64,000 nt of DNA, from positions 992,001-1,056,000 of the forward strand of contig CM119376.1 in the NCBI GenBank assembly GCA_051294905.1, written 5' to 3'. Of this stretch, positions 8,929-11,900 are shown piece by piece. Origin of the DNA: Botryllus schlosseri (lineage: Eukaryota). Position 1 is the stretch's first letter, and every line of letters begins with the position of its first letter. The notes beneath the pieces are model-generated. The model did no database searches, had not been told where the DNA came from, and worked only from the letters and a program-made list of their open reading frames with translations. The position numbers and the translations under genes were made by a program.

Positions 8929-11900
8929 TTACATCTTCTGTATAACTGTGGGTGATATAGGGCCTTCACACAATACCACGTCTTGTACGTTTGATTGCAG
9001 CAATTCGAGTCCCTCATTTCTTAGATTTGCTGCTTTCATGCAAATTACCACATTCCGCCTTTTGCTTTTCTTTGTTGGCGTTCTGCTCAAATGAATGAAT
9101 CTCCTGTTCATCCGTTCAATGCCCGCGGACATTATCTGTCTCGCATTGTTTTCGGTCGTCATGTGGTACAGTACCTCGTTACCTTCATATTTACAGTACG
9201 GAGGAGGCGTCCCTTTTGTATGTCCATGGGCGGCCGCCATACCATATTCCGTGGTTATTGCTCTGTCGCATCTTTGCATGACACTCTGTATTTCGTCCGT
9301 GTCCATTTGTTCCCCAGTTTTCTTTTGAAAGATACTGCAAATATCTTCCCAAGGATGGAACCCGTTCACCGAGTTGTCGCAAAGTTCATGTCGACAGTGA
9401 TACATCAGCATCTGTTGTATTTTTTCCGGTCGGGGTCTTTTCTGTCGGTTCGAAACGCCCTTTTTCTTGGGAATCGTCGCCCAAACATGTGGATCATCTT
9501 CTCCCGCAGCCATCTCCATCCAATAAGAACGAGACAATCCATCTGACGTAAATACCTGCATCGTACTTAGATGAACCACCTCTTTTATTTGGAATCCTGC
9601 TAGATGATTGAGCCACCTCTGAATTAGGGGTTTTGGGCTTGGATTTTTCGCTTTGTCCGTCATTCTTTTGAGGAGCCCAAAAACCCCAGTATTATCAGTG
9701 ATTATTGTAAAGGGTAAGGCTCTCAACATTGATTGCCATTTTTCCACCGAATCTTTTAAGGCTTTCAATTCCTTTGTACATGGATCATAAGCCTTTGCCG
9801 TTGGAGTCGCCCACTTTTGGCTGTAGTAAGCAATTGGGTAAACCTTTTCGAACGGTGGTTTACACCCTTTTTCCGTCTGGAAAATGATTGATCCAAACCC
9901 AATATCTGAAGCGTCCGTTTCCACAAAAATGGGAAGATTTGGATCCAGATGATACAGAACCTTAGCATCATCGAGGGCTGCTTGTGCCGTTTTGAAGTCC
10001 TGCAGTAATTCGTTGGTCCATAGCACAGGCGTCACTCGTCCTTGTGTCGCAGGGACCTTGCCTGTCAGCGCATCGAATTTGGCCAGCTTCAAACTTAACT
10101 CAGGAATATGTTCCGAGATGTAGCGAAGTGCGCCAATCCACCCCCTTAACTCGTATACATTATGGGGTGGTGAGAGTTCGCGTAAAGCCCTTATTCTTTC
10201 GGGCTGAACCTCGATTTCTTTCCCCGTCAAGGTTGCCCCCAAAAGGTTTACCCTTCGCTTTCCAATAAAACACTTATTGATGCTAACCGTCAGTTTCATC
10301 TTGGCGAGCTGTTCAAATACCATGCGTAGCAGTAGTAAATGGTCTTCTACAGTTTTTGTGCTGAGGAAAATATCATCTATGTAGGCCTCCATAGGCGTTG
10401 CATTCTCCTCGTCTGTCCTGCCAACTTGTTTCATGTGTTGTTGGTATTTTTCCGTGATAGGTTTCACCACGCATTCCTGCATATTCGCTGACCAAAGAGC
10501 TACAGCTGTTTTAAGCCCCATCGGCATTTTACGCCATCTTACATGCATCCCTTTGATGGCTATACCCACATATTGTTTAGACCTTTCCGTGACATCCATG
10601 TGGAAATAGGCCTTCTTCAAATCAAGGAGAGAAAGCACTCCTCTGCCTTGGGCGAGCTGCTTTACGTCCGGTACCAGAGGTGGAGGTACTTCTATTGATT
10701 TTATGGCCGCATTAAGAGGTTGGAGATTCTGTACCACCCTCCATGCTTGCTTCCATCCGTCCTCCTGTTTTTGTCTCTCATTCATTTTCTGAGGGACCAC
10801 AAAGATAGCCAACTTCCATTCGGCAAAACCTCGTTCGATAACGCCCAAGTCCAGGAAGTTGTCTACGGCTTCTTTCAATGCTTTTGCCTGGCCCTCCCCC
10901 TTTAAATTATAAGGCCCAGACACAAATGGTTTCGTCGAGGGATCTTTAAGCTCGATGTCGCATTTGTATTTCATGGTTTGCGGGCCCCCAAGATGGCCTC
11001 GCAGGTCCTCGAGTTCGGATGCGAACGGCGTGTAGACGGCTTTCCAAACATCATCAGCAATAATGGTGTTTTCTGGAGTCGTCAGATCGGGAGGTTTGTA
11101 TGGGAGTTTGGCCAGCGCTACGGATTGTGCGCAGAGATTTTCGAGCTCCGTCTTGACACGTGGGTGAGTGTCTTTCTGTAAAACATACGTAGTGACTGGA
11201 CCAGCCATTGGCTGGTTTGAGATTCGTGATGACCGGGTTTTCGGTGTTGGCGGAGAGAGGGCGAGGTCCTTCGATGTATGCCTCTGATCTCGGCGCGTGC
11301 CCGCACCTACCGTCACGCCGACGGATTCCTTTTCCGCCGGGGGCCCTTTTTCTGGGGAGACGTGCATCATAAAATCCCCAGACTCCTTGTCGGACATGTC
11401 CGGATGTGCATCCGGCTGACCGGCAATTGCTGCTTCGATTGAACCTTTTGGGAAAGTACTCATTACTGTGGCTGTCGTCATGCAACTATGGGCCGAATCA
11501 TTAAGGTTATTCGGACAAGTGCATCCACGAAGGCACTTAGGACCAGTTTTCTCGTGCAGGTCTTTATTTTCGCCAGAGGACATTTCGCTCTGGATGTCAG
11601 TTGTAATAGTCGCCATGCAACTATGGGCCGGATTCCTATTGTCATCCGGACAAGTGCATCCGCGAGAGTGTTCTGGACCAGTTTTCTCGTGCAGGTCCAT
11701 CTTTACGCCAGCGGGGATTCCACGCTCGACGTCTTCATTAACGGTGTCAGCAGGCATTCCTGTCTCAACACCTATAATTTCCCATGGGTTCTGTGTGACG
11801 TTAGTTGCTAATTTCAACTCGTCGCTCGCACCAGTGGTTATTTCCATCCCGGTACTCGCGCCAGCGGCCATTTTCCGCTCCACGCTAAATTGGTTTGCAG

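Follow-up and report, generated by a model that had tools for sequence, protein, structure and literature searches.

A Tpt1/KptA-family domain at the C-terminus of a retroelement Pol

Analysis of a 64,000-nucleotide stretch of Botryllus schlosseri DNA (contig CM119376.1, positions 992,001 to 1,056,000; hereafter the window) confirmed a Tpt1/KptA domain fused to a retroelement Pol after RNase H, the position where Ty3/gypsy-type Pols carry integrase. Tpt1/KptA enzymes use NAD+ to ADP-ribosylate a phosphate on RNA or DNA and then, in the full reaction, remove it. The domain occupies window positions 8932-9435 on the minus strand (Pol aa 1035-1202, with the stop codon at 8929-8931) and forms the last 168 residues of an unbroken Pol ORF of 1202 codons (8929-12537, minus strand), beginning after the RNase H motif SDGLSR at aa 998-1003. 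The plus strand of 8929-9426 is full of stops, and a run of N at 1094-1230 lies far from the domain. An earlier note, made from the sequence alone, had proposed this fusion, and its central reading holds. We found no published report of this domain in a retroelement.

The resemblance to Tpt1/KptA is far beyond chance. Pfam PF01885 (PTS_2-RNA) scored 39.8 bits (E 6.6e-10) in the whole Pol and 45 bits (E 1.7e-11) for the domain alone, against a curated cut-off of 26 bits, and covered profile positions 6-177 of 177. NCBIfam RNA 2'-phosphotransferase models matched at 2.6e-13 but below their equivalog cut-offs, indicating a family member but not an ortholog-grade match. All ten single-sequence PDB hits were Tpt1/KptA, the best at 2.4e-6, and a profile built from relatives matched PDB Tpt1/KptA structures at E 3.2e-19 with nothing else significant. 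The domain scored far better against archaeal and bacterial Tpt1 (E 1e-19 to 1e-14) than against mouse or human TRPT1 (E 1e-4 and 0.02). An AlphaFold2 model (pLDDT 89.9, pTM 0.69) predicted the two-lobe fold of this family, with an N-terminal winged-helix RNA lobe and a C-terminal ADP-ribosyltransferase-like NAD+ lobe, and the top 21 PDB hits of this model in Foldseek were all Tpt1/KptA (E down to 2.6e-11, TM up to 0.71).

All four residues of the catalytic Arg-His-Arg-Arg tetrad are present. Window residues R1049, H1050, R1092 and R1145 align with the tetrads given in PMC10622864 and PMC12678800 (Pyrococcus R14-H15-R62-R115, Thermococcus R17-H18-R65-R118), and the R1092-to-R1145 spacing of 53 equals that of R62 to R115. 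The earlier note had held that one catalytic arginine was replaced by alanine, but this was an error of alignment register: the alanine aligns with a non-tetrad arginine just before the GHS/GHT motif (Arg71 in Pyrococcus Tpt1, by our count along the alignment), so there is no sequence reason to expect altered chemistry from a missing tetrad residue. Across 22 family sequences the four positions are R 19/19, H 18/19, R 20/20 and R 18/19. The NAD-lobe histidines of the window domain are H1125 and H1149; H1125, which corresponds to the histidine essential for step 1 (Thermococcus His98), is conserved in 19 of 20 sequences. Two other features depart from cellular enzymes. The conserved Lys two residues before the second Arg (Thermococcus Lys63, Pyrococcus Lys60) falls in a 2-residue deletion in the whole family, and the Tyr before GHS is variable (Y 10, H 3, A 3, V 2, N 1, C 1). 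The family also has its own invariant His-Cys-His set (H1047, C1053, H1061). Between two copies from one assembly, dN/dS was 0.040 for Tpt1, 0.050 for RT-RNase H and 0.60 for the linker, indicating that the domain is as constrained as RT-RNase H.

The remainder of Pol reads protease, about 400 aa of low-complexity linker, reverse transcriptase and RNase H. The aspartic-protease region (12043-12360, minus strand; about aa 60-165) carries a DTG motif at aa 84-86 (12280-12288); the motif and its flanking block are conserved in relatives, and one relative has a weak Pfam RVP hit, although the window copy itself has no Pfam protease hit. A tandem duplication (11474-11733, minus strand; two copies of about 125-135 nt, 77% alike) lies in the linker between protease and RT, and a comparable duplication was found in the linker of a relative. 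The RT domain (10228-10752, minus strand; Pfam RVT_1, aa 596-770) has YIDD at aa 719-722, and RNase H (Pfam RT_RNaseH_2 / RT_RNaseH, aa 840-982) lies at 9592-10020 on the minus strand. No rve or integrase zinc-finger hit was found in the window Pol or in any family member, whereas the outgroup gypsy hits all carry them.

Upstream of Pol is a gag-like ORF of 938 aa (12477-15293, minus strand), unbroken, with one CCHC zinc knuckle (aa 774-787, nt 12933-12974) and homologous to ORF1 of the relatives; it has no PDB relative. A slippery heptamer, A AAA AAC, lies in the gag frame at 12492-12498 (minus strand), 12 nt before the gag stop. It conforms to the X XXY YYZ rule, and since Pol is in the -1 frame this is a predicted -1 ribosomal frameshift site giving Gag-Pol. 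The same frame relation follows from the ORF coordinates of three relatives (L001, L003 and L004). A primer-binding-site-like motif beginning TGGTG, an inferred tRNA 3'-end complement, was found at 15602-15619 (minus strand), 309 nt upstream of the gag ATG, with one match in the window against 0.01 expected. A TGGTG-initiated motif sits at the same relative place in five elements from relatives, but searches for the primer found no tRNA gene in the window or in six loci. From a shift in base composition the window copy extends approximately from 8600 to 15660 (minus strand), comprising a 5' leader, gag, pol and about 330 nt of purine-rich tail. No LTR or terminal repeat was found around it by repeat finder, k-mer scan or short-word BLAST, and none of the relatives examined had flanking direct repeats; only a terminal repeat of about 17 nt, possibly up to 27, was seen in one relative.

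The same fusion occurs in one continuous ORF in at least 10 full-length or near-full-length relatives from four ENA assemblies and one metagenome contig. Only integrated copies were seen, and a scan of IMG/VR viral contigs found no relative. Relatives come from marine and other assemblies, lie in head-to-tail arrays, and carry a CUB ORF and a large ORF downstream of Pol. The large ORF has no Pfam or PDB match, and calling it envelope-like rests on its position, its size, and a hydrophobic segment followed by a heptad-like stretch. By Pfam, no integrase, tyrosine recombinase or nuclease was found in gag, the CUB ORF, the large downstream ORF or the small 3' ORFs of relatives. The window copy has no CUB or env homology next to Pol. 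However, an 847-aa ORF at 44750-47293 (minus strand) is homologous to the envelope-like ORF (tblastn E 2.8e-40 and 1.9e-18 to the L001 ORF), and a 1132-aa ORF at 41264-44662 (minus strand) has a partial paralogous match to the same family; neither has a Pfam hit. The former is 29 kb away from gag-pol, so it is probably not part of the same copy. A single giant element spanning 8.9-48.3 kb was rejected because base composition differs between blocks and a primer-binding motif lies directly upstream of gag. In a sister lineage (L054), an APE1/ExoIII-like nuclease follows Tpt1 directly.

We interpret the domain as a genuine, probably active Tpt1/KptA-type enzyme that, as an inference, most likely acts on the element's own nucleic acids during reverse transcription; if Pol is made as a Gag-Pol fusion, as inferred from the frameshift site only, the domain should travel into the particle beside RT. 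The role we favor, with a probability of roughly 0.55 for this reading, is the last step of RNA repair, the removal of an internal 2'-phosphate (or a terminal 2'/3'-phosphate) from the genomic RNA or the primer. Such marks arise when RNA cut by metal-independent RNases is resealed by a Trl1-type ligase. A 2'-phosphate at a ligation junction can impair reverse transcription and is removed with Tpt1 in library protocols (PMC8782182). The second Arg of the tetrad is selectively needed for phosphate removal (the Runella mutant slows step 2 by 210-fold and step 1 by 3-fold), and its invariance favors the full reaction. KptA domains embedded in RNA-virus polyproteins have been read as RNA-repair modules (PMC9503650), and the nuclease of the sister lineage is another end-processing enzyme. 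No source of 2'-phosphate was identified, however: Rfam searches found no ribozyme in the window or in three relatives, at gathering thresholds or at E ≤ 1. In Thermococcus Tpt1, mutants of Lys63 and Tyr77 both stall at the ADP-ribosylated intermediate, suggesting that the family could be an ADP-ribosyl "capper" rather than a phosphate remover, although the equivalent Lys mutants of the yeast, human and mouse enzymes are functional.

Capping is the main alternative, though we consider it less likely. In this view the domain mainly performs the one-step reaction, placing ADP-ribose on (or stripping) the 5'-phosphate ends of the element's cDNA or RNA, which would protect them from 5'-phosphate-dependent nucleases or ligases and, in an element without integrase, could mark them for host break-repair machinery that then inserts the DNA. 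Some Tpt1 enzymes cap RNA and DNA 5'-phosphates with ADP-ribose, for which protection from exonucleases or signalling has been proposed (PMC6182162); Thermococcus Tpt1 acts on DNA 5'-phosphate with the same residues, and RNase H generally leaves 5'-phosphate ends. The domain also sits exactly where integrase is missing, and the arrays of relatives show short filler or microhomology at unit joins, while one copy (L003) sits between 1.4-kb inverted flanks, features typical of repair-mediated joining. Nothing shows, however, that the array joins were made by host repair rather than by template switching, and the near-invariance of the His and second Arg of the tetrad, which matter most for the removal step, weighs against capping, as does the functionality of the Lys mutants noted above.

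A role in counter-defense seems unlikely. NAD+-ADP-ribose domains are recurrent weapons in virus-host conflicts and phage KptA is linked to tRNA repair (PMC9503650), Tpt1 also takes the 2'-phosphate from NADP(H) (PMC10622864), and fold relatives occur in unrelated viruses; the domain might, for example, repair host tRNAs cut by an antiviral RNase or consume or modify a phosphate-bearing immune nucleotide. But its slow evolution between close copies is unlike that of the fast-evolving conflict ARTs described in PMC9503650, and fusion to RT-RNase H suggests action inside the replication complex. That the domain is an inactive passenger, or only a nucleic-acid-binding winged-helix module, is still less probable: the sister lineage keeps only a partial Tpt1 match (profile positions 7-125 of 166; Pfam 29.9 bits) and one relative shows several substitutions at key positions, but the catalytic and NAD-lobe residues are near-invariant in 22 sequences at 22-47% identity (86% for one close fragment), with strong purifying selection and an unbroken ORF in the window. 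Chance read-through of a host TRPT1 exon or a neighboring gene was rejected, given the recurrence of the fusion across assemblies and the closer match to archaeal and bacterial Tpt1.

These observations are of interest because Tpt1 is conserved in many organisms that have no known source of its substrate, and its role outside fungal and plant tRNA splicing is a long-standing puzzle. A selfish element that keeps an intact Tpt1 fused to its reverse transcriptase links the enzyme to one defined process, which may help identify its natural substrate. More tentatively, the window copy may belong to an undescribed class of reverse-transcribing elements of marine eukaryotes: tRNA-primed, envelope-bearing relatives of Ty3/gypsy and caulimoviruses without LTRs or integrase, which carry in the integrase position end-processing enzymes taken from cellular repair pathways, either Tpt1 alone or Tpt1 plus an APE1/ExoIII-like nuclease. 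NAD+-dependent chemistry on RNA or DNA phosphates would then be an integral step of their replication or insertion. A group of virus-like retroelements that dispense with integrase and LTRs would bear on how retrotransposons, pararetroviruses and retroviruses are related.

Cellular Tpt1/KptA/TRPT1 RNA 2'-phosphotransferases (e.g., Pyrococcus horikoshii 8TFI, Thermococcus 9LD4, Runella 7KW8) share the Pfam family and the two-lobe fold predicted here, but they are free-standing enzymes rather than the C-terminal domain of a retroelement polyprotein. Tpt1/KptA domains have been recruited by other virus-like replicators, in polyproteins of invertebrate RNA viruses (Botrylloides leachii nidovirus, Beihai picorna-like virus, Melipona quadrifasciata virus 1a) and as free genes of sawfly nucleopolyhedroviruses and Bodo saltans virus (PMC9503650). 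Several of these were the top fold matches in the viral library (E 1.8e-9 to 7e-5), but they are RNA or large DNA viruses, none is a reverse-transcribing element, and that survey mentions no retroelement KptA.

Among reverse-transcribing systems, Ty3/gypsy elements (Metaviridae), including env-bearing errantiviruses, share the RT_RNaseH_2-type RT-RNase H, an aspartic protease, a CCHC gag, Gag-Pol by -1 frameshift (predicted here) and an extra envelope-like ORF, and gypsy Pols, at about 25% identity, are the nearest non-family database hits; here, no integrase or LTRs were detected. Caulimoviridae have protease-RT-RNase H without integrase (PMC11363490) and, in general, tRNA-type priming, and relatives show head-to-tail arrays like those of endogenous caulimovirids, but the terminal repeat seen in one relative is very short. 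Cauliflower mosaic virus RT (8R0S) is the best solved match to this RT-RNase H (2.1e-17, against 8.6e-12 for Ty3). In contrast to these plant viruses, the hosts here appear to be marine animals or other marine eukaryotes, judged from CUB-domain ORFs and marine metagenome contigs; there is no movement protein, CUB and envelope-like ORFs and Tpt1 are present, and integrated units begin and end at the presumed RNA termini. A DIRS-like element was rejected, since Pfam found no recombinase domain in any ORF, a protease is present, unlike in DIRS, and the inverted arms of L003 occur at one locus only and lie outside the unit defined in other copies. The sister lineage L054 carries a full APE1/ExoIII-like EEP domain in Pol, as LINE-type non-LTR retrotransposons carry an APE-derived nuclease, but C-terminal to RT-RNase H-Tpt1 rather than N-terminal and much closer to cellular ExoIII/APE1 (E 1.8e-42); the window Pol has no such domain. 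Finally, dUTPase and the 2H phosphoesterase of a fish retrovirus (PMC9503650) are also host-type enzymes added to reverse-transcribing elements, and the 2H domain belongs to the same RNA-repair pathway as KptA, but these are different enzymes in a different position, in viruses that keep their integrase.

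Window 8929-12537 on the minus strand is one unbroken ORF of 1202 codons, and its last ~165 residues, which lie directly after the RNase H block that ends in SDGLSR, read as in the earlier note, which had proposed a Tpt1/KptA-like domain fused to Pol where the integrase should be. The coordinates in that note (8929-9426) are right, but the strand is minus; the plus strand of the same stretch is full of stops, and a 151-aa ORF lying antisense to the Tpt1-coding stretch (window 9091-9546, plus strand) has no support and is most likely a by-product of the coding strand's composition. 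Pfam annotation of this Pol identified RVT_1 (aa 596-770), RT_RNaseH_2/RT_RNaseH (aa 840-982) and PTS_2-RNA, PF01885 (aa 1040-1192), the last with 39.8 bits and E 6.6e-10 against a curated cut-off of 26, or 45 bits for the domain alone, covering almost the whole model. Every significant single-sequence match in the PDB is a Tpt1/KptA enzyme. A profile of eight family domains scored 3.2e-19 against Thermococcus KptA, 1.3e-17 against Pyrococcus Tpt1, 2.4e-15 against Runella and 1.9e-14 against Clostridium Tpt1, but only 5e-6 against yeast Tpt1, 1e-4 against mouse TRPT1 and 0.02 against human TRPT1. An AlphaFold2 model built on 14 family sequences was confident (pLDDT 89.9, pTM 0.69), and a Foldseek search with this predicted structure returned Tpt1/KptA for its 21 best PDB matches (E to 2.6e-11, TM to 0.71), with the next match four orders of magnitude weaker.

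The essential Arg-His-Arg-Arg tetrad of these enzymes is Arg14-His15-Arg62-Arg115 in Pyrococcus Tpt1 (PMC10622864) and Arg17-His18-Arg65-Arg118 in Thermococcus Tpt1 (PMC12678800). Counting along the alignments, the second Arg lies 13 residues before the Gly of the GHS motif and is not the Arg immediately before that motif. Window Arg1092 is exactly 13 residues before Gly1105, and the profile alignment places it on that catalytic Arg. The tetrad is therefore R1049-H1050-R1092-R1145, in which the R1092-R1145 spacing of 53 equals that of the Pyrococcus enzyme, and the Ala that the earlier note took for a lost catalytic Arg matches a non-tetrad Arg. In 22 family sequences the four positions are R 19/19, H 18/19, R 20/20 and R 18/19, and the NAD-lobe His, essential for step 1 in Thermococcus, is 19/20. 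Two differences from canonical enzymes remain: the Lys two residues before the second Arg is removed by a family-wide 2-residue deletion, and the Tyr before GHS is variable. In Thermococcus Tpt1, alanine mutants at both positions stop at the ADP-ribosylated intermediate, although the Lys mutants of the yeast, human and mouse enzymes are functional (PMC12678800). The family also has its own invariant His-Cys-His set (H1047, C1053 and H1061; nt 9355-9399), none of which aligns with an identical residue in the one solved Tpt1 alignment that covers this stretch (8tfi); it is possible that these residues form a metal site flanking the catalytic Arg-His pair.

The protein databases hold a small family with the same architecture. 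The database proteins P0001-P0007, which are 37-45% identical over RT to Tpt1, and P0031, P0034, P0074, P0075, P0117 and others all carry the domain after RNase H, whereas the next-best hits are ordinary Ty3/gypsy Pols with integrase at about 25% identity. These relatives come from four ENA assemblies and two metagenome contigs, one of them labelled marine, and none was found in IMG/VR. One 90%-identity cluster has 215 member sequences, so the family is multicopy in that assembly. Between two copies from one assembly, dN/dS is 0.040 for Tpt1 (49 synonymous and 9 non-synonymous differences), 0.050 for RT-RNase H, 0.020 for the protease region and 0.60 for the linker; the domain is thus as constrained as the polymerase.

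Upstream of Pol on the same strand of the window lies a 938-aa gag-like ORF (12477-15293) with a CCHC knuckle, which is homologous to ORF1 of the relatives. Pol is in the -1 frame, and the heptamer A AAA AAC sits in the gag frame 12 nt before the gag stop (12492-12498), which fits the X XXY YYZ rule for -1 frameshifting, so a Gag-Pol fusion is predicted. Pol has a DTG protease block conserved in the family, and between protease and RT is a linker of about 400 aa with a tandem duplication. At 15602-15619 on the minus strand, 309 nt before the gag ATG, is a motif starting TGGTG, for which one match was found against 0.01 expected. An equivalent TGGTG-initiated motif lies about 75-120 nt upstream of ORF1 in five elements from relatives, with lineage-specific continuations, as expected for complements of different tRNA 3' ends. 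We read it as a primer-binding site, although a search for the tRNA itself did not identify it. Gag and Pol have no stops or frameshifts in the window copy, but the copy lacks the downstream genes that relatives have, which we count as one truncation or deletion. No LTR or terminal repeat could be found around it, so its ends (about 8600 and 15660) are approximate.

Beyond the 5' end of this copy, window 16758-30918 holds a dense run of co-oriented minus-strand ORFs, each a single uninterrupted reading frame, with lower GC (0.33-0.39) than the retroelement. Among these are a ubiquitin-conjugating E2 (17967-18461), an IAP with three BIR domains and a RING (20123-21817), an ISXO2/IS1595-like DDE transposase (22971-23918), an LRR protein (24606-25655) and a four-member paralog family (16761, 17374, 19123, 19524). 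Every ORF of at least 150 aa from 8.9 to 48.3 kb that is not nested antisense within a larger ORF is on the minus strand, and the run could be a gene cluster, a large mobile element or an endogenous viral block. An inverted repeat of about 640 nt, 74% identical (5772-6415 and 29528-30154), brackets the retroelement copy plus the co-oriented ORF block and is probably two copies of a dispersed repeat. Within window 41264-48322 on the minus strand, two large ORFs related to the envelope-like ORF of the Tpt1-bearing relatives lie directly downstream of a second ISXO2-like transposase ORF (47396-48322, 38% identical to the first), with no gag or pol nearby. A 552-aa plus-strand ORF at 49915-51573, with DDE_1 and Tc5 HTH domains, is a pogo/Tc5-like DNA transposase.

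The full anatomy of these elements can be seen in the relatives. In the loci L001, L003, L004, L005 and L006 the order is ORF1, Pol, further downstream ORFs including a large ORF of about 1100 aa, then several kb with small ORFs; a CUB-domain ORF follows Pol in L001, L004, L005 and L006. The large ORF is split in some copies and is mutually homologous among loci. It has no Pfam or PDB match, and we call it envelope-like only from its position, its size and a hydrophobic-plus-heptad region. In L001 the units lie head to tail with a period of 13,778 nt, and one unit carries one internal deletion. Comparison with L005 shows that units begin and end at the same points, with a short repeat of about 17 nt, possibly up to 27, shared by both ends, and with the primer-binding motif about 30-45 nt from the 5' end. 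No LTR, integrase or recombinase was detected anywhere. In L003 one 13.9-kb unit sits exactly between 1.4-kb inverted arms (5993-7391 and 21338-22736) that are 98.6-99% identical, which is either insertion at the centre of a palindrome or an inverted duplication of the flank made at insertion; only one case was seen. A hairpin in an inverted repeat of L004 (21352-21430) scored 44.2 bits against the let-7 precursor model, below its gathering score of 53.5; it lies several kb downstream of the last ORF shared with the related copy L006, so it is probably outside the element, and it is probably a chance or unrelated hairpin.

A sister lineage, L054 (721-6727), comes from the same assembly as L001. 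Its Pol of 1122 aa is 40% identical to the window Pol through the Tpt1 domain and then continues into a complete APE1/ExoIII-like domain, which matched Pfam PF03372 at 1.9e-18, PDB ExoIII at 1.8e-42 and human APE1 at about 1e-32. Its downstream ORF matches the alphavirus E1 (class II fusion) glycoprotein family (5e-19). This lineage too is arrayed head to tail, with a unit of about 9.3 kb, and the Pol of the second copy is cut short, with a DDE-transposase gene lying at its end (one break, read as an insertion). So the integrase position in this group is occupied by enzymes that process nucleic-acid ends, and envelope-type genes have been exchanged.

The domain is a Tpt1/KptA family member with all catalytic residues, fused to RT-RNase H and kept under strong purifying selection in a family of elements with no detectable integrase, and we infer that, as part of Gag-Pol, it enters the particle and acts on the element's own nucleic acids. 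Of the readings that fit the known chemistry, the one we tentatively prefer, with a probability of about 0.35-0.4, is the full two-step removal of a 2'-phosphate. Such marks are left when RNA cut to 2',3'-cyclic phosphate and 5'-OH ends is resealed by a Trl1-type ligase; they can impair reverse transcription, and library protocols remove them with Tpt1 before the RT step (PMC8782182). Some Tpt1 enzymes also remove terminal 2'/3'-phosphates (PMC6573784), which would free a blocked primer end. This reading is favoured by the invariance of the second Arg and near-invariance of the His, which are needed mainly for the removal step (PMC10622864, PMC12678800), and by the published interpretation of KptA in RNA-virus polyproteins as RNA repair (PMC9503650). 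A less likely alternative is one-step ADP-ribose capping, or removal, of 5'-phosphate ends of cDNA or RNA (PMC6182162, PMC12678800), which is favoured by the missing Lys, the variable Tyr, the position in place of integrase and the repair-like joins between units. A counter-defence role in NAD+/ADP-ribose conflicts is also conceivable, but the slow evolution of the domain argues against it and we regard it as improbable; a non-catalytic role seems the least probable of these possibilities.

Tpt1-like domains are known from viruses. A fold search of the viral library found them in a bee-virus non-structural protein, the Botrylloides leachii nidovirus replicase, a sawfly nucleopolyhedrovirus and giant viruses. 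A survey of 21,191 viral proteomes lists the nidovirus, sawfly and Bodo saltans cases, calls KptA rare in eukaryotic viruses and mentions no reverse-transcribing element (PMC9503650), and our own full-text literature searches, which combined Tpt1, KptA or PF01885 with retrotransposon, retroelement, reverse transcriptase or endogenous retrovirus terms, found no description of this fusion. The enzyme family and the idea of accessory enzymes in Pol are known, but this combination, and perhaps the element group itself, appears to be new.

Among solved structures, the RT-RNase H part matches cauliflower mosaic virus RT best (8R0S, 2.1e-17), followed by foamy-virus RT at 7.5e-14 and Ty3 at 8.6e-12, although placement remains provisional without a phylogeny. 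With protease-RT-RNase H, no detectable integrase, inferred tRNA-type priming, very short terminal redundancy and tandem integrated arrays, the logic of the element may resemble a pararetrovirus as much as a gypsy element. However, units ending at the presumed RNA termini and high copy number suggest active retrotransposition by an unknown route.
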